Of a stretch of 64,000 nucleotides of DNA, positions 47,399-58,211 are shown piece by piece (position 1 is the stretch's first letter; the number at the start of each line of letters is the position of its first letter). The stretch spans positions 30,851-94,850 of the forward strand of contig JAAPAO010000068.1 in assembly GCA_013115145.1 (NCBI GenBank). The letters are read 5' to 3'. The position numbers were made by a program, and so were the translations under genes. The notes below the pieces were generated by a model. It was not told the origin of the DNA. It was given only the letters and a program-made list of their open reading frames with translations, and made no database searches. The stretch comes from Perkinsus chesapeaki ATCC PRA-425 (taxonomy: Eukaryota; Protista; Perkinsozoa).

Positions 47399-49059
47399 TC
47401 ACAGGTTCAGATTCCACATCAGCAGAATGACCAGAATTAGGAACAACGCCTGAGAGGGGAATGTAAAGTAGCGACTGGAGACGACTCACTATAACGGTGC
47501 AGAGCTGCTTGTGATCGGAGGTCTTGAGAAGCCTCGAGAGGCCTCCCATGACGAAGTTCATCTGCTCCTGCTGTCGATCGATGTTCTCGTCCAATTCGCT
47601 AAGCATCCGCTGTTGGTCCTGGAGAGGGAGGTCGTGAATGTCAAGGATGTGGCAAATGGTCAGGAATGAATGATAAATAATACCCACATTTTTCAGCGGT
47701 TGTCCAGCGGTTGAGGAGAGAGTTGCCCATAATTTTCATCAAAGTTTTCTTCATGATGGAAAAGTTGGTACACCCGGAAGGCCAACATGCCCAGAATGCT
47801 TTTTGAGATTACAAGTGGATTCACTCTAGGGTTGTTAAACTTACGTATAATTCAACGTTGATGGCCTGAGCTGCCTCCCCTAGGCGATGAGTGACCCTCG
47901 CCAAGTCGTCCAGTTGCTCATCTTGCTCCTGGACCAACTGCTGCTGGACTTGCCGGTTCGTACCGATCAGCTTGGAGTTCTGAATGTCCCGCTATGAGAA
48001 TCACCGTGAAAGATGTCAAACGTTACCTCCTCGCTGACGGCTCGTCGAGCCTCTCCCTCTTCCATTTGCAGCATCTCTCGATCCTTGCTGAGCCTCGACC
48101 GGGCGGCCTCCGAGCTGATCGCATTCTTCACTGTGCGCACCTGAGCAACGGCGATAAGATTCCCGTGATGGTCAGAATGAACACAGGCATATGAAACCAA
48201 CGGCCACTGAGCACATCTCTCTATCGAGAGATGTTATATTCCGATTTATTCTATTGTCGATGTTTTTGTTAGTCCCGATGTATTATTATTCAATTGCATC
48301 TCCTCACTATTACTAACACATTCCTAAGAGGCTGGTAGATGTCCGGTTTACCTGCTGTCTCATCCGTGCGGCCCATTCCCTTCGACTGGTAAGCTCGCTG
48401 CTTGAACAATGCCTACAGAAAGGAAGTCTCACATGGGAAGAGTGTATGCAATACCAGGGTATCGTGGAGGACAAACAAGCAGTTGAGTCATACCGGAGAC
48501 AGTACCCGAATAAAATCCAATTTGGTGGAGGCACTAGTATTAATCAAAAACTAGAGTCCGATATATAAACGAGCTAACCTACTCTATCAGAAAGTCCGAC
48601 ATATAGGGAAAGTACAAAATATAAAGATATCAGAAAGTCCGAGCTGACCTACGCGATCAGAAACGACCGAGCTTCTTGGGCCAACAATGCCACCTTCGTA
48701 TCTTTTCGGACATCGCTATGAACTCTTACGGAAATCTTTCCGGGTGCTTTTCAACCGCTCGGATACTCGCATCGACATCTCTCAAATCAGCCGTCAACGA
48801 ATGGGTCTAAAAAGCAAGACATTCCTCATCAAAGGCGCCTGCGGCTTACATCGTCCTTCAATTTATCCTGGAGCTCCGCGAAGCTGGAAGATCTCGCCAA
48901 GTTGCCTCCATTGCTCTGCTTTGCCTGCCACTTCTGGAAGCACCTGGTCATCTCATCCACCGAGCTTTGGACCTACAACAGTATCGACCCCGTATAACAC
49001 TTAGGCGCACCTACCTCATCCCTTGCCACGTAGAACGGATCCGAGGCTGCCGACGCCAT
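47399..49059 (-). CDS. STX6: Syntaxin-6/Tlg1-like Qc-SNARE
   Basis: N-terminus MASAASDPFYVARDE; SNARE motif QEQDEQLDDLARVTHRLGEAAQAINVEL...DQQRMLSELDENIDRQQEQM; C-terminal TM ...LCTVI|VLFLILVILLMWNLNL*. Confidence 0.9.
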
Positions 49060-49444
49060 GAACAAAAAAGTCTAATTCGCACTTTGCTATCCCTTTAGAG
49101 TATCTATAAGCCTTTCCGAGTCGAGTTTTAGAATCCTCCAAGACTGGGTCGATCGGATTTCCCCGAATTTTCGCAAAGTTTTTCCTCCACATTGATCGAG
49201 CATGTGTATAAACGGTAAAGTAATGAACTCGAAGCCTTTGAGAGTGTCATGTGTGAAGGTGGTGGTGGTAGACGGTAAGATCGGTCAGACGGTTTGGTGA
49301 AATGTTCAACTTATTGGTAGCAATGTTATAATAGCCTATGGTAAAGTGGGATGAATGTTATCGAGCAACAATCGCTAAATACACTATCGCTAATCTTTTA
49401 CAAAAATTCAATCAGAATCTACAATATCGACTTCGCGGATGTCT

Positions 49445-52400
49445 TCAGTTCCTGCAGGGGACATCGTCCATAATAGTGTCATCATTGTCGGAGGAGAAGG
49501 ATCCCTCTCGGGCCAGCAGTGAGCTCGCTGCCAACGACATATTAGAAGTACAGCCATCGTCAGCAACTCGACCAGTAGAAGTCCACAGCTCGTTTATCTT
49601 CGAGTAATCAATATGACAACCTCCTGAGAGAGGGAAAATACTGATGAAAATCGGCCGCCATGCGCACGTACTATTTACAATGGTGATTTTTTGTATACCT
49701 TAATACATCCTTCCATTTAGATCAACGCCTATTCTTCGCAAGTTCACAGCGAATTACGAAAAGGCGTTATTTTTCCTGCCATTCCCCACTCACCATCATC
49801 TCCAGTAGTGACGCAAGGCGCAAAGGTAGCGTTGACTACCAGATCATCGATGGTGTAGCTGTGACGAGCTTGCAGCGTCGAACTCGTGTTACCCTCGATA
49901 CCCTGACCAGTAGCACTGATACTATCCATAAAACAACCAGAGCAATATTACCTCGACCAAGACGACGACTTCCCAGTAGCCGCAACGTGAGAGGTAGTCG
50001 TAGATGCGCTCGGCATGGCTTCGATCTCCAACGGAGGCAGCGGAAACGCCTACGAATCAAAACGTCCTGGCTGGTAATCGAACCCGGGTCGTCTTACTTC
50101 CCTCGTGCCCTGCTATTTCATCAGGCGGCAACCTGTGGGAGTATTCCGGGGGACAACCGTTAATCTCATCGTTAACTTGGTTGTAGACAATATGAGCTCT
50201 GAAAAAAACCAAGTTACATCGCTAATGACAGAAAATACACCTGCTGTATCCTATAGTATCAATCGGCCATTATAGGACAGATTTTGCAAGACCCGCTCAA
50301 AAGTGATCCCTTTTGGCTTAATCCAGGCGCTGGTCTCCACCCTTCCACGCGCACGAGTGTGGGAAAAGATACGACTTTCGGGCCTACCTAAGGTCGACTT
50401 TTGTGTGAAATGTCTCCCCACAGGTTGGGCAGCCATAGTCGTCCCGGAAGCCTTGAAGGCCATCGCACTCGCGCAGTGGCGGGAACGGGAAAGTATCGTG
50501 CCGCTGAGCTAAACGACAGCACCACATAATATTTCGTTACGCGTATCATTCACTTACATGGCGGCATCAAGGGAGAATAACGATCGATAGAGTGAATGAC
50601 CAGAGTCGGCATGGCAAGCAGCACCGAGGCGCCCAGCTCATCGTTGGGCCTGTTCAAGCGCATGTATCTGACAAGGTCTCCTGCAAGAGCGGTTGTATTA
50701 TTATTGTTGTCTATTACTCTCCAACAAATCTATATCTTCCACGATGCGAAAAGAAATAACATCTAACGTGAGCTTCTATTAATTGATGTTTTCTCATTTC
50801 AACTATTTGAAACATAAAATATGGTTTGCCATCGGAACCAGTTCTAATAACTGCTTTATCCGAGAACAGTATAGTCTCCGCACGCTTTCCTCCCCGAGAG
50901 AGCCGGGTGTATCTGATAAACCAATCACTCCTTAAATCAACAGCGCGGCCGCCGAGGCGATCAAATCTACACCAGCAATCAACACTGACGCAAAGTGTCT
51001 TCAATGTTAATCTCCCGCGATGTTAAAAATTAGCCGGGGTCACCGAGTTTCAAAAGTGCACTACGCACCCTCCAGTACTGCTGTTGTTGTTGAGGGAGGG
51101 ACGTGTCGAATGATAGCATTCCCTATTGCGCTGAGCCTGTGAAACTGCTCGCGAGCTAAGCGAATCTCTCACGTGACGTTAAAAGAGACAGTATGCCTTT
51201 CGCCTTTTGACTTACAATAGACCTATAATGGATGCATTCAGCAGCACTGTCACACAGCATTGCATTGACAATACCACAACTCCGCTTGTACAATCGGAGA
51301 AGTACCTATGACAGCGAACACCACCAAAAGATGGATGAGTTATAGCACTTACTGATCTGGTGCACCAAACCCCACTGTGGCTTGGGTCTCCATTGAGAGA
51401 TAGAATGCCCTAAGATAGCTGCCTTCGAAAAGTGCTCCACAAGGCTCGTCCACCAATAGCCACAGACCAGCAAAGGCTGCCACAACCGCTATGTAACTGG
51501 ACACGGTGACGATGAAGTAGATAGAGGATACGCCGTAGTCACTTACAACACAAGTATGCCGGCAATAAGCATGTTAGTGTTGATATCCAATACACTATGG
51601 AAGAAGTCGCTCATGTACCTGAGGCGCCGCACGATGCTGGCAAGCTCTAAGGTCCCTCTAGAAAATCAAGAAGCATCTATGAATCTAACCAATCCCAAAA
51701 AATCCACTTCGCTCTTCGAACTCTGTGCTTCAATCCTGCACGGTCGGAATTATCCTATTTGGCTACCGCAAGACCAGTAGCACGCCTAGTCCTCACGGCG
51801 GTACGCCGATAGACCTACAGTGACTGCAGCTGATTCTTCCTGTCAATTTTCATTGTGCCGCTGCTCTGCTTCATGGGGCGTTCTCGGTTGAGTAGTCGAA
51901 ACACCGGCTTGGATCGATGCCCTCCAGGAAGAATGGGAGCCTACCGGCGCCGAGATGACGAGATATCTTCGACTAGGAGCTCACTGATCCGCGCTTCCTT
52001 TCGAATGATATTCCGCTGTCATCGTCTTGATATGCCCCGGCGACATCATCAGCGTTACTGAAGATGACACCCTAGGTGCAGGTTCGATCCCCGGTGGCGG
52101 TGTTTTACTCGAATATTTCCAACCCAGGCCGAGTGACCATGCCCGCCTTGCTATGGAAGGTGTACTCGTTAAGGCTTTTCATTGACATCTGGTTAAACGA
52201 AGTCCACTCAGAGGGCATCCTAAACCAAGTCCATCGCTGCCGGGCCCGACCACAGCGGCTTACCCGTGAACGTTAAAGTCGTTGATAGGGAGTTCCCCCT
52301 CGGTAGCCGAGGGACGGTAGTAGACCGACGGCCGCCTTCGGGTGTTCTCCATAAACGATCTCCTCCTTCTAGAAAGATCTCCGATCCCTGGGCTTCTGGG

Positions 52401-52508
52401 AGGCATCAATTCCTCTCTTGGCTGGAGTAACTGCTGCTGCTGCTGTTGTTCAGCGAAGCTCTCCATCAGAGGCATCCTAAAACGGCGCAGAATGCCACCA
52501 GAACTCAT
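49445..52508 (-). CDS. Inward-rectifier K+ channel, paralogue 1
   Basis: M1, pore AFYLSMETQATVGFGAPDQ|YFSDC, M2 ...LNASIIGL, then RAETILFSDKAVI, HQLIEAHVR, PTLVIHSIDRYSPL, WEVVVLVE|GIEGNTSSTLQARHSY and IDYSKIN. Confidence 0.9.
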
Positions 52509-53218
52509 CCTCCACTATACAGAGATATCTTTTCTCCACATAATGAATGCAAAATTTGCCCATCATTATCCTTCACATGAAATGATGAATAAAACTAAGC
52601 AAATATTCCCCCCGTGGTGGTCTACTCTAGGGTATCCAACAACGTGAACGATCCCCCTAGAAGATATGATCCTTGTCATCCGATACTGTGGTATGATACT
52701 GTCACTGATACTCACCAGAGACGATTGCTTTCTTCGCAATAATTGTATAAATATTCCTATTTCTGCGCACCAGTAGTATACCTTCTACTCTACCGTTGTA
52801 CAAGTTTTCATAAATTGTTATTATTATACTCCGTTACGCGGCACAAGGAGTTCATAGACTATCATAAGGATTATATCCAATGGCCCTATCCTTGGCAATA
52901 GTCATTTTTCCTATTGCAGTCCCCAGCCAGAAACACTTCTCGACCACCCGGAATGGAAAGCACTTACGTTGGTCGGAGGGTTGTGGTATCAGTTGTCCTC
53001 ACCGTCTGCCCTGGACGCCCATCATCCCCATTAGGAGTGCTCTTAACGCTGCTGTTCGAGCTACTCGACATATACAAACGAAACTATCAACACGCTCAAC
53101 CACCTCAATCAGCCAAAACTCAATACCAACAGCGGAGCGAAGCCAAGGAACAGACAGTGAGCCGTAAAGCATGGTAAATAAAAAGAAGGGCGTAAGCCCG
53201 GACGGGCCAGGCTCTATC

Positions 53219-55090
53219 TCAATTCCTGGAAGGAACTTCCGAAATAGTTGCCTCAGCCCCTCTAGCTTCCGAGCTCGGGGGCCCGCTGACGCCCTGTACC
53301 TCCGGGCCCAGCAATGGCCAGACCGTGTTAACGTAGGAATAATCGATAACGCACGAGGAGTCTGGGAGGAGATAACCGTGCGCATGCGTGCAAGATGATC
53401 TTACCATCATTAGCTGTTCCTACACATGGAGCAAAGGTTGCATCGAGCAGCAGATCATCGATGGTGAAGCTGTGCCGAGCCTGGACTGTTGAGCTTGTAT
53501 ACGGTTCGATACCCTATATAGGGTATAACGGCAGAGAAAATTAAGTCGGCCGCCCCACCTCGACCAGAACAACTACTTCCCAGTAACCAATAGCCTTGAG
53601 ATGACTGAACAATACATCGGCCTCTTGGGAGGAGGGGACTGCTCCTCCTAAGGTGGCAATATCGAGGTCCCGGGTTCAAATCGGAGGAGCGTCATTCTCA
53701 CACCGTTATCCCCCCAGCCGGTCTACTACCACTTCCTTTTCGTTCCTCCGTATTGCCATTGCAATGGTGAGAGAATTGTTCAGGTAAGCCGGATAGTTCA
53801 TCCAGGATAGCCCTGTACCTCACGTGCGCCCTACCAGAACCAAAAATTGCAAAACAAAATACGCTTCGCTCCGCTTACCCCAACTGGCTGACCGTGTGGA
53901 AGCTTTCACCGCAAACCCTGCAGTCCAGTTCATCCCTATTACCATCAAGCCCATCCGAGCCTCTCAACTGCGGCAGTGGGAAGGTGTCTTGTGTCGTACC
54001 TGCAGCAACCTGACACCAGCGTCGGTCCACTCCTTACTATTGGGGCACATAGGAGAGTAGCGGTCTATCGGGTGCACTACTATAGCTGGAGTAACCAGCC
54101 AAATTGGAGAACCCCGTCCGTCGTCTGGCCGACTCAGCCGCATTCGCCTGCCATGGAGGTCTCCTGCAGGAGCGGTTGTATTATTATTGTTGTTTATTAC
54201 TCTCCAACGAATCTATATCTTCCACGATGCGAAAAGAAATAACATCTGACGTGAGCTTCTATTAATTGATGTTTTCTCATTTCAACTATTTGAAACATAA
54301 AATATGGTTTGCCATCGGAACCAGTTCTAATAACTGCTTTATCCGAGAACAGTATAGTCTCCGCACGCTTTCCTCCCCTTATCAATCGGGTCGTCCTAAA
54401 TCAGCCCTTTGCTTCGCTCCGCCGACAAGCCGTACAATATGCCCACAACAGATCCATTCAGCAACACCATGGCACAACACTCCATCGCCAAGGTCACCGC
54501 TGCACTAACACAGTCCGACGAATACCTATCGGGAAAATGTGCTCCTTTTTAGCGGAGCGAAGCTCTCCTTCGGATACTCACGGTTCATAAGTCATTTGAT
54601 AAAACGCCTTCCAATAGCTGCCATCAAAGTCCAATGCACATAGATAGTCGATGAGCACCCATATGGCAGCGAAGCCGGCTCGGACTGCCACATAGAGCGC
54701 GAAGACCATACCAATGAGGACGCCAGTAGAGCAGTCTAGCGCGCTATGAAAAAGGTCACTTAGTAACCTACAGGGTATCTTTCAAGGTTCAAGTTCCTCT
54801 ATCCCCACGACTACGCAGCTCTCAATTGTCCCTTCCTCGCTACCCTCATAACCTTCCTACTCCTCCCTCCACTTCTCCGTGGCAGTAGCCTCTGTGACGA
54901 ATATCCAACCATCAGGGATCCCTGGCGCCTACCGCGGTGGATTGATTAGCCTTGATGCTTTGTTCTGATACAGACAAGGCCGGCGATCGCTGACTGGGAC
55001 TGAGATCAGGCAGGTCTATCCTGACTTAGACGATGCAGCTGGCATCACTCTGAGGTCGAGGATCCCAAAACTGCGTCTCCAAAGCGACAT
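53219..55090 (-). CDS. Inward-rectifier channel paralogue 2, lacking the selectivity filter (5' end uncertain)
   Basis: Exons colinear with paralogue 1 and open through to EVPSRN*; the pore exon reads AFYQMTYEP|YSSDC. Confidence 0.8.
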
Positions 55091-55443
55091 TATAACTCCG
55101 CTCCACTCGAGAGAGGTGACTCTACCTTTTCTATGGGAGACAATCACGTTAAGACTCCCGCCCTCTACGCACTCGTGCGGTGAAATCGTCAGTGACAATC
55201 TCGCACTAGAACGACAACTGGTGCCAGTCGAGGTGCATAGTTCAACCCGTCAAACTACTCTCACTATCCCTGCTTTTCCCGCTGAGTCGTCAACAGTCCA
55301 CTACCTCAGAGTCGGCTTAGAGCCATGCGGAACCCAGAGGTCAGCGAGATAGCCACCATTTTCCTCGTACGCTAGTGGCCAACTAAGCCTTCCAAATACA
55401 GCCAGACAGACTTTGTCATCCTTACACTGCAGGAACGCCACTC

Positions 55444-55818
55444 ATCTTATTAATCTGTCGATGCTCCACAGGTGGCTCAGCCTCTGGTATCGTTGATAGT
55501 GTTCGGGCATGGCCCAGGATACACCTGACTTGACCTCCAAGGCATCTACCCCCTCCGCACAGCAGGAGTACTGGTCTACATGTCCTCCCCTACATACGTT
55601 GGCGAAGGAATCGATTTCCACACAACAACTTGGTGTCCCCATACTAGCAAGTTCCGAAGAATCCTTTCCAATGACAACTCATCATGAAAATTGCAAAGCT
55701 CAATCCAATACTCGATCCAATACTGCGGCCCAGTCGTGGAGTTCCCCACCGTTACTACCTTCCCGTCCTCATCTCCCCACCGCTCCGCCGCATTAGTCAA
55801 TCTAACTGCCCCCATCCA
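55444..55818 (-). CDS. Possible small hypothetical multi-exon gene
   Basis: MGAVRLTNAAERWGDEDGK|YWIEYWIELCNFHDELSLERILRNLL|GRTCRPVLLLCGG... can be joined by GT-AG introns; no homology recognised. Confidence 0.25.
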
Positions 55819-55926
55819 TCCCCACACAATTTGGGACAACAAAAAGGAGCACTCCTAGATTCGTAGAAACAAATGATAATCGACATATCCATAAAGGTTT
55901 AAGTAAATCCTGTTCTAAACAATAGC

Positions 55927-58211
55927 TTACAAACCATAGTCAGCAGCGACCGGAGCGGGCTTGCCAGGAGCGCCGCCGACGATCTCATAAGTGGCCTTAG
56001 CGACCTCGAAGGCCAACTCATTGGCTTCCTTCTCTGTCTTTGCTTCAGCGTAGATCCTAGACCAGATATGATGCTATCAACCTCCCAAATATCTTCCATT
56101 ACCTCACGGCATCCTCAGTGCCGCTGGGCCTCACGAAGGCTCTCCCGCTCTCCTTCTTGGCCACAAGAGCGTCAATGGCAGGCTGAAGTGCCTCAGGAGC
56201 GTAGGCTGCGGTCTCATCGGCAGTGCCTGACAACAAGGCAATGCTTCCCAATTGTTTCTCCTTCAACTTACATTTCACCACAGTGCGGTCCTTGACATAG
56301 ATCTTGCCCTGTCTCGAAGGCAAGTCCTCGTACATAGCGTCCCACTCCCCAATGGACCACTTGTTCACAGTAAGAACCTACAGTACATTACAATCACACC
56401 CCGCAAACCAGCGCAGCTTCTTACAGCCTCAACTGCGAGGAAGTCGGAGATGGCATCGCCGACGGCCTGGTTGATGAGCCAGGAAAGTCCGAGGAGTCTC
56501 GAAGCGGCCTCCTTAGCTCTCTTCGAAGCTGACATTGTTCGCTATGAATAATTTCACAGTCCTTCCCTCCTTGTATTACCCTTATCATCAGCCAAGATGC
56601 CATTGAACTTAGCAAGAGCTTCGGGCTTGAACACCACAGTACCGTGACCGTTGGCCTCGAAGTACATGCCAATGGGATACTCGTGAGCGACAGCTTCCAC
56701 CTGAACAACGATTCCAACGCCTACAAGTCGGACGGTCTTACAAATTTGACACCGGTTTTGGCGAGCTCGACCCGTGCACCGAGCTTGTTACGAATGAAAC
56801 GGCCAGAGTTACCGTTGGCATAAGCGGTTTGGACCTGAAGTGTCATTTTCCAGCGCGCCACGAAATGCAAGACTTACCGCAGCGAACTGGCAATCGTCAT
56901 CATCCTTCAAACCAGCCTGATTCAACTGGGTCTGGATGAACTCAGCGAGCAGGGCGGCGATCTTATCACCGTCGAGAAGATGCCACCTGGAGCACATTAC
57001 TGTAACCAAGGCCTCTAGATCTCCTTACTTCATATCAACGTCCCAGAAGGAATACACCAATCGATCGGCATCACCGTCGAGAGAGGCAATTCTATGACCG
57101 GCATCAGCCGTAGAAGAGAAGGCTCCTGAGCACACAGAGTCCTCAAGGCCTTCGGGGAGGTCCTCTATTACCCTTAGGGGGGCATCGGCCCTTCTGGACG
57201 TACTCAGCACCGCACTCGTGGTTGAGGATAAGACCGGGAGTAGCGGGGCCATTACGAGGCACAATGGTTAGAATATCCGACATGGCAGCGGCGACCTTCT
57301 CTACCATCTCGAAGCCAACTCCACCGGCAGCATCGACAAGAACAGGGCCGCGAGCGAGCTGGGCCTCCGCAGGCACACCGGCGGTGACACGACGGAAACC
57401 TTCGTTGAACATACGGACGAAGCCCTCCTTGCTTGCCAAAGACACGTCGTGGCCGAGACCGTTAGACTGACGCACTATGTGGTGAAGGGCAGGAGTGGTA
57501 AGTTCGCCCCAGTTCTCACAGTAGCCGCCAACAGCAGCCACGCCTCTGCAAACCTAAGCGATGGGGAATATGGGAGATGTGCTAAAAGGGAAGGCCTACA
57601 CATCGGAGCAGGCGCTGACTGCTGGATCTGGTATCACAGCCAACGAAGACCACTCCGGCCTTGCAGGTGCATCCCTCGAGGGTCTTCTCGATGAGGCCAC
57701 GGAAGGTGGCAACCTGAGGATGATATGAAATGCGAGGAAATCTCTCAAAAAGGTCGAGTTACGTCGTCGGCGTTGGCCACCTTCTCGCAGAGCTCTTCCC
57801 AGTCAGCGACGAGCATACCGCCGTTGGGCTCAATCATTTTAACGCCATTATCCTGAGCGAGATGCACGCATGAACATAAAGATACCCTCAATGCGACGAA
57901 AAAAACCCTCGTTCCCGAGCCCGATTCTTACGGGCTCGGGATTGTGAGAAGCGGTGATCATGACACCCATAACCTTGCCGCCGAGGACTCTAGAGCGAGC
58001 AGCGGCGAGAGCGCCCATACGGAAGAAGACCGCATCCAAGGGTAACTCATCAGCTACCTCACGGAACCCAGCCGTACCTACATTTGAGAGAAATACGGTA
58101 TGAAAACTACCGCAGAGCACTACCGTAGGCGAGGTTCTTAGAATAGGTCTTCTGATGCTCTGGAAGGGAGGCGAGAGCTTCAAAACAGTCAGGGAGAATC
58201 GATGAGGACAT
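55927..58211 (-). CDS. PGM3: Phosphoacetylglucosamine mutase
   Basis: YG|TAGFR, active-site [10 protein letters not shown]...[50 protein letters not shown] and [12 protein letters not shown]. Confidence 0.95.

Follow-up and report, generated by a model that had tools for sequence, protein, structure and literature searches.

Can a gene of the inward rectifier potassium channel (Kir) type lose the segment that selects for potassium and still be kept by selection? The question is raised by two Kir-type genes that stand in tandem on the minus strand of a stretch of 64,000 nucleotides (nt) from Perkinsus chesapeaki ATCC PRA-425 (contig JAAPAO010000068.1, positions 30,851 to 94,850; hereafter the window, in whose own numbering all coordinates are given). 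One of them, P1 (49445..53071), is canonical and carries the filter sequence T-V-G-F-G, whereas its upstream paralogue, P2 (53219..54912), does not. K+ channel families are defined by this signature sequence, and the filter is built from four copies of the signature strand, so that a subunit without the signature yields no K+-selective pore. The original prediction, made from the letters of the window, described P2 as an intact Kir paralogue with the filter deleted in frame, and our analysis indicates that P2 is probably an intact, filter-less gene that has been under selection.

Gene model of P2 and the missing filter

The P2 gene was modelled by hand and checked by script. It runs from an ATG at 54912 to a TGA at 53219 and comprises 10 exons (54912-54815, 54767-54582, 54525-54436, 54395-54201, 54147-54038, 53999-53879, 53830-53733, 53647-53559, 53513-53405 and 53361-53219) separated by nine GT-AG introns of 38-85 nt; the coding sequence of 1239 nt is a multiple of three, has no internal stop and specifies 412 amino acids. 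The reading frame of exon 1 (..RLLPRRSGGRSRKVMRVARKGQLRAA) agrees with P1 and with the family profile. Exon 2 (54582..54767) holds the slide-helix motif LLSDLFHS, M1, the turret with the first conserved cysteine and a shortened pore helix ending in ..AFYQMTYE(P), and exon 3 (54436..54525) holds YSSDC, with the second conserved cysteine, and M2 (VSAAVTLAMECCAMVLLNGSVVGI). Between them lies an intron of 56 nt (54526..54581; GTGAGT...GATAG) with the motif GCTTCGCTCCGC inside. The exons downstream of the pore do stay open to a stop similar to that of P1, as had been claimed, but the two C-termini had been exchanged: P2 ends in PSRN* (53233-53219) and P1 in PCRN* (49459-49445).

By alignment, most of what makes up a Kir subunit is still present in P2. 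Its N-terminal strand, the D-x-F-H-S motif of the slide helix and M1 are there, as are the two cysteines of the loop, and M2 has an asparagine at the rectification-controller position. Behind M2 come the basic tether and the cytoplasmic Ig-like domain, with the VLVEGIE...QARHS block that corresponds to the G-loop region of animal Kir channels and a zinc-finger-like C-x2-C-x12-H (as C-R-V-C-G-E-S-F-H-T-x7-H), and the C-terminal ..VP-x-RN tail is kept too.

The pore loop is different. A six-frame search with strand reading located both paralogue strings where the original prediction had placed them: in P1, GSYLRAFYLS-METQATVGFG at 51423-51364 and YFSDC at 51304-51290; in P2, GSYWKAFYQ at 54622-54596 and YSSDC at 54524-54510. 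Across the exon junction P1 reads ..GSYLRAFYLSMETQATVGFGAPD(Q)|YFSDC and P2 reads ..GSYWKAFYQMTYE(P)|YSSDC, and both exons stop after the second base of a codon (..GAT CA|GTAAGT in P1, ..GAA CC|GTGAGT in P2), which bears out the predicted identity of intron position and phase; the homologous P1 intron (51306..51352) measures 47 nt and reads GTAAGT..CATAG. The gene models and the alignment likewise agree with the predicted shortening, P2 having 10 codons fewer than P1 between the conserved AFY and Y-x-S-D-C. With these codons P2 has lost the pore helix at its C-terminal end and the entire T-V-G-F-G signature, whose codons in P1 (51364..51378) align to T-I-G-Y-G of Kir2.2. The loop that separates the two cysteines of P2 is 23 residues long. 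In the alignments, the pore-loop remnant QMTYE(P) of P2 (54582..54598) faces LSMETQATVGFGAPD(Q) of P1; in so short an alignment the gap, or gaps, of the P2 loop can be placed in more than one way. The P2 model contains no T-x-G-Y/F-G.

A filter-restoring exon was sought at the P2 locus and none was found. No match to [TS]-x-G-[YFLWM]-[GS] is present on the gene strand from the P2 ATG (54912) to the first exon of P1, the 56-nt intron has nothing filter-like in any frame, and 52800-55900 has a single match on the minus strand, ~800 nt upstream of the P2 ATG.

The flanks of the gap have also changed. Where filter-bearing relatives are conserved (AFY-LSMETQ..GAPDQ), P2 reads AFY-QMT-YEP, and the replaced positions are those of S-x-E-T and G-x-P-D. 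A single 10-codon gap cannot turn a loop of the P1 type into that of P2, the best alignments requiring two gaps or several replacements. Because these flanking positions have been replaced and one recent deletion does not reproduce the loop, the divergence suggests a long period of evolution without the filter while the remainder of P2 was under selection.

P2 within a protist Kir-like family

The assignment to Kir channels, also part of the original prediction, holds on several comparisons. Exon 4 of P2, the exon it shares with P1, scores 27.3 bits against IRK_C (Pfam cut-off 22.5), and exon 5 gives a collinear match below the cut-off, of 17.2 bits at profile positions 62-91. With single-exon pieces, the Pfam IRK profile gave no match to P2 at E up to 1 and sub-threshold scores of 13-15 bits for the pieces of P1. 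The P. olseni orthologue of P1 exceeds the Pfam cut-offs for IRK, with 45 bits, and for IRK_C, with 69 bits, and the P. marinus orthologue matches residues 86-251 of Kir2.2 (3SPH, 3JYC) with E=8e-20, placing ..SMETQATVGFG.. over ..SIETQTTIGYG... The extracellular cysteines of P2 (..DYLC.. and ..YSSDC..) fall in the columns of ..EPCG.. and ..FSDC.. of P1 and its relatives, a pair that we take to be C122/C154 of Kir2.1.

A profile built from non-Perkinsus relatives aligns as a single match to residues 5-381 of P2, with 310 bits, compared with 427 bits for P1. M1 and M2 align to it free of gaps, and the sole internal deletion in P2 is one of ten profile positions, in the block SletmtTIGYGvpd. P2 also has the features of a protist Kir-like subfamily: the R-L-L-x-R strand, D-x-F-H-S, the MRL-x-P-D-D block and the C-x2-C-x12-H insert. 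Relatives numbered 339 in an exhaustive search with the shared exon and 145 in a word search with an orthologous P1 protein, and they come mostly from marine protist transcriptomes, stramenopiles, Blastocystis, Salpingoeca (a choanoflagellate) and alveolates; the best match to the shared exon is a partial 'inward rectifier potassium channel' of P. marinus ATCC 50983, whose 90% cluster includes P. olseni proteins.

A signature of the type T-[IVF]-G-[YFW]-[GSEF] is present in all but two of the 105 relatives in which the pore region is readable, the two exceptions being a protein with a degenerate Y-T-G-F-F and one whose upstream part appears wrongly predicted. Judged by these relatives, a filter deletion like that of P2 is unusual in the protist Kir family. 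T-I-G-Y-S replaces T-I-G-Y-G in many relatives, and T-I-G-W-G or T-F-G-F-S does so in a few. A second case of a degenerate filter, suggested by two Logan proteins with the string ..STRRSGTPD.., was rejected, as an intron splits T-I-G from G-T-P-D and the open reading frame (ORF) caller had read through it.

In many members of this family the cytoplasmic domain carries an inserted C2H2-type zinc-finger motif (C-x2-C-x12-H...), located at 50388-50508 in P1 and at 53879-53999 in P2. Precomputed Pfam annotation assigns zf-C2H2 to several relatives, and the designed zinc-finger protein 2I13 is among the PDB matches; the P. olseni orthologue of P1 scores 20.7, below the cut-off of 25.2, and the P2 exon has no match. 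We found neither a described function for a zinc finger in a Kir cytoplasmic domain nor functional data on the protist zinc-finger Kir family.

Selection and decay

Outside a tract of near identity described below, the P1 and P2 proteins are 47% identical over 344 codons. Identity at the three codon positions is 0.58/0.66/0.33, against 0.26 expected at random for the third position, and among the P1 orthologues it is 0.92/0.96/0.44, a pattern which indicates that replacement sites have been protected while silent sites are saturated. Pairwise ratios of non-synonymous to synonymous change (dN/dS) are unreliable here: four-fold sites are only 0.31-0.33 identical even between P1 orthologues, and most estimators failed or returned dS >1.5. 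In place of this ratio (omega) we used the asymmetry between codon positions, simulation and tests on conserved columns.

When the P1 core was evolved neutrally to t about 0.55, chosen to match the first and second position identity observed between P1 and P2, 0/20000 frames were open and the predicted amino acid identity was 34%, against the 47% observed; at t=0.3 the fraction of open frames was 5e-5. P2, with about 0.5 replacements per non-synonymous site, has an intact frame, and a long neutral history is thereby excluded. The replacements are also unevenly placed. P2 equals P1 at 52/69 columns conserved across the non-Perkinsus relatives and at 50/142 variable columns (35%; Fisher P=4e-8), and it keeps the consensus residue at 51/69 of the conserved columns. 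Its losses cluster at two sites, the filter together with the adjoining end of the pore helix and an N-terminal Q-S-x-G motif; replacements elsewhere are conservative.

The marks of a pseudogene, namely stops, frameshifts, lost splice sites and equal rates at the three codon positions, are all absent from P2. Each of its nine introns occupies a position and phase common to P1, with every GT and AG intact, and an intron within M1 is cleanly missing with no disturbance of the frame. The irregular splice sites of P2 are no warning sign, because functional P1 orthologues are equally irregular, with 5' sites such as GTAGAC, GTCAGT, GTGACC and GTGGGT in introns of 44-54 nt. The original prediction had argued against simple decay, and the open frame, the splice sites, the codon-position pattern, the conserved residues and the end-to-end profile match all speak for that view. 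By these sequence-based tests we show that P2 has evolved fast, yet that selection has kept its frame, its splice sites and the residues conserved in the family.

Origin of P2

Aligned as DNA by blastn, P1 and P2 share a tract of 222 base pairs (bp) at 98.2% identity (54157..54378 in P2, 50674-50895 in P1) and two short weak stretches only. The tract covers most of P2 exon 4 (the M2-proximal tether and the first beta strands, GGKRAETILFSDKAVIR...) and most of the next intron, and probably reflects a recent gene conversion. The exon in this tract is 95-98% identical in protein and 73-82% in nucleotides when the three Perkinsus species are compared. In our reading P2 arose by duplication, at the level of DNA, of the core of the P1 gene beside it.

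On the age of the duplication, tree and synteny disagree. In a tree the four Perkinsus sequences form one clade (100/100), within which the three P1 orthologues group together to the exclusion of P2 (93/89); forcing P2 to be sister to the P1 of the window costs 7.5 log-likelihood units (approximately unbiased (AU) test, p=0.035). Synteny favours a lineage-specific gain, because P2 is missing from the syntenic site in both other species and the P1 of the window is sister to that of P. olseni; the conflict between tree and synteny may stem from long-branch attraction. Amino acid sites that differ between the P1 orthologues (1 vs 2) carry no signal on the date, and silent sites are saturated throughout. 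An intron of 50 nt inside M1 (51497-51546) is found in P1 of all three species and is precisely missing from P2, so that it was either lost by P2 or gained on the stem of P1.

Possible role of P2 and alternative explanations

With no better than even confidence, we favour P2 as a selected, fast-evolving filter-less subunit that would act as a modulatory or dominant-negative partner of P1. The original prediction had likewise offered a dominant-negative or regulatory role, and beside it a non-selective pore. Having no signature, P2 would form no four-fold carbonyl cage and would thus not be a K+ channel alone; its conserved interfaces, in the membrane and in the cytoplasm, would let it co-assemble with P1, and as a pore-dead auxiliary subunit it would lower or alter the conductance of the P1 complexes. 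Subunits with a mutated GYG are dominant negatives through co-assembly (PMC13524552), and Perkinsus uses spliced-leader trans-splicing (PMC3101222). Because of this trans-splicing, and because the P2 stop lies 147 nt before the predicted P1 start, co-transcription of P2 and P1, and hence their co-expression, is plausible. A role as partner of P1 is favoured over others because the parts for assembly and gating are kept, P2 stands in tandem with P1, the exon for the tether and beta strands appears freshly converted and the two genes may be co-transcribed. The fullest version of this proposal, in which P2 is expressed, is co-transcribed with P1 and enters heterotetramers with a non-K+-selective or shut pore, is one that we regard as doubtful.

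Several observations weigh against a selected partner subunit, and most of them would suit instead a gene that was recently disabled, in which the filter deletion was the first lesion of a fast-evolving, working channel paralogue that is now an unexpressed or useless relic. P2 has lost the one motif needed for the function of its family, together with the conserved N-terminal Q-S-x-G, and its branch in the tree measures 1.32 substitutions per column compared with about 0.04-0.05 for the P1 orthologues, so that constraint is much relaxed. Complementary DNA (cDNA) has verified P. marinus introns down to 39 bp (PMC3101222), and the P2 introns of 38, 40 and 43 nt are at or below this verified minimum. 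By blastn synteny, P1 comes next after the phosphoglucomutase-family gene (PGM) in P. marinus and P. olseni, P2 being missing there, and tblastn of the P2 exons on the syntenic contigs recovered the P1 copy only. A P2-like protein was found neither in the exhaustive shared-exon search nor in word searches that had the P1 proteins of P. marinus and P. olseni as queries; these searches covered protein databases and the syntenic contigs, and other Perkinsus genomes may hold further copies that are unannotated. No P2 orthologue was thus found against which the filter-less state could be compared. Two small sequencing runs labelled with the same species placed no reads on 49400-55000 and say nothing for or against expression of P2, and its co-assembly with P1 is wholly something that we infer. 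Extrapolation from the simulation indicates that the frame would survive a brief spell of neutral drift, of less than roughly 0.05-0.09 substitutions per site, so that a relic could look intact because too little time had elapsed. The pore loop itself fits this history poorly: the flanks of the gap are strongly diverged and no clean single deletion of 30 nt yields the present sequence, the filter was removed in frame, and M2 and both loop cysteines are kept. We consider a recently disabled gene a possibility to be reckoned with, albeit a rather unlikely one.

A selected P2 might also conduct. In homotetramers of P2, or in heteromers with P1, the shortened re-entrant loop (..QMTYEPY..) could line a wider, non-K+-selective cation path gated by the retained Kir cytoplasmic machinery. 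Such an altered pore would explain the conservation of M1, M2, the rectification-controller asparagine, the tether and the G-loop block, which would be needless for a pure scaffold, and an acidic residue and aromatic residues are left in the loop; it has no clear precedent in a family whose readable members keep the signature almost without exception, and we think it improbable. An artefact, be it a missed filter exon, an alternative splice site or an assembly gap of 30 nt, has in its favour that the seeming degenerate filters of two database proteins proved to be ORF calls through an intron splitting T-I-G|Y-G. At the P2 locus, no filter-like motif is available on the gene strand before P1, the intron has room for only 56 nt with boundaries homologous to those in P1, and P2 differs from P1 by many substitutions besides the gap, unlike a collapsed assembly, which makes an error of this kind very hard to credit. 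The partner role thus stays our preferred reading of P2.

P1, its orthologues and the surrounding sequence

The conserved core of P1 (51940-49445) has 11 exons in a hand model checked by script. Comparison with P. olseni and P. marinus proteins adds ~200 N-terminal residues, coded from ~53071, the start codon being placed from the orthologues. For P2, tblastn of the N-terminal P1 exons against 54700-56000 gave chance-level matches only, and nothing like this extension was found there.

Orthologues of P1 are KAF4688426 and a second entry in P. olseni, under the name 'G protein-activated inward rectifier potassium channel 2', and two proteins of P. marinus ATCC 50983, the partial XP_002777644 ('inward rectifier potassium channel, putative') and a full-length protein ('Inward rectifier potassium channel irk-1, putative'). 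In the P. olseni contig JABANP010000152 (11800-11840 and 13790-13800), small indels relative to the window break the frame in two P1 exons, which accounts for the odd N-terminal part and the early end of the annotated 633-amino-acid protein, and the full-length P. marinus protein (GG675180) runs through an intron in the zinc-finger region; both are probably errors of assembly or annotation.

The window is collinear with contigs of P. marinus and P. olseni at 70-80% DNA identity, the three species being about equally distant. Proteins of the window itself were absent from the databases searched. Upstream of P2 lies the PGM gene (55902..58211, minus strand), identified from called genes and blastn synteny. 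The spacer from the P2 stop to the predicted P1 start (53072..53218) is 147 nt long, whereas ~630-1000 nt precede P1 in P. marinus and P. olseni, and its shortness raises the questions of where the P1 promoter is located and whether P2 and P1 form one transcription unit resolved by trans-splicing.

Short recurring strings were noted in this region. The 12-mer GCGGAGCGAAGC occurs nine times in the window in both orientations (8694, 11585, 12632, 19471, 46044, 53132, 53863, 54411 and 54552), where 0.3 copies were expected and 0/100 shuffles reached nine; three copies are in P2 introns and one is in the spacer between P2 and P1. Because the flanks of its copies are unrelated, we read it as a short motif, not a repeat element. 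Strings resembling the T-arm of transfer RNA (tRNA), GGTTCGATT, GGGTTCAAATC and GGTTCGATCCCC, are found in differing orientations in the P1 intron at 50050-50097, in the homologous P2 intron at 53648-53732 and in an intron of the N-terminal part of P1 (~52060-52107), none of them called as a tRNA by ARAGORN, which found no tRNA genes in 49000-56000.

Comparison with known potassium channels

The closest comparison is with the P1 proteins of Perkinsus, which have the same architecture as P2 from the R-L-L-x-R strand to the ..VP-x-RN stop and share with it the Perkinsus-specific blocks DTFP.P.LR..DGL.G.RD, GYWEVVVLVEGIE and ATFAPCV and nine intron positions and phases. P2 differs from them in having no 10 pore-helix and filter codons, no N-terminal extension of ~200 amino acids and no M1 intron, and it evolves many times faster. 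The inward rectifiers of animals and bacteria (IRK PF01007 and IRK_C PF17655; Kir2.2 3SPH/3JYC, Kir3.2, Kir6.2, KirBac3.1) have the same M1-P-M2 and Ig-like domain; their loop cysteine pair, basic tether and G-loop block are recognisable in P2, whereas the signature is missing, and the protist family is set apart from them by the C2H2-like zinc-finger insert in its cytoplasmic domain.

If P2 has indeed lost its filter and is still under selection, the Kir scaffold would be reusable beyond the selection of K+, for instance in regulation by co-assembly or in a different pore, and P2 would be the first natural Kir subunit known with the signature deleted rather than mutated and a natural test of how much pore loop the fold needs. 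Were it to act on P1, the ratio of the two subunits would be a genetically encoded setting of the membrane conductance of the parasite. Perkinsus is an economically important parasite of molluscs (oysters and clams) whose ion channels are essentially unstudied; our literature searches found nothing linking Perkinsus with inward rectifiers, and a phrase search of the library used found nothing on K+ channel subunits without a filter or GYG in the sense of P2.

Kir5.1 and the electrically silent Kv subunits are paralogues that act chiefly by heteromerising with a conducting partner. To our knowledge, both keep an intact signature sequence, unlike P2, and pore-dead K+ channel subunits are known mainly as laboratory mutants. 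Kir5.1 is reported to be mostly non-functional alone (PMC10008857). Engineered subunits of Kir and other K+ channels in which GYG is changed to AAA resemble P2 in keeping the assembly interfaces while contributing nothing to the filter, and their co-assembly suppresses conduction (PMC13524552). These are laboratory point mutants in which the length of the loop is kept, whereas P2 is a natural gene from which a segment has been deleted and whose co-assembly is putative.

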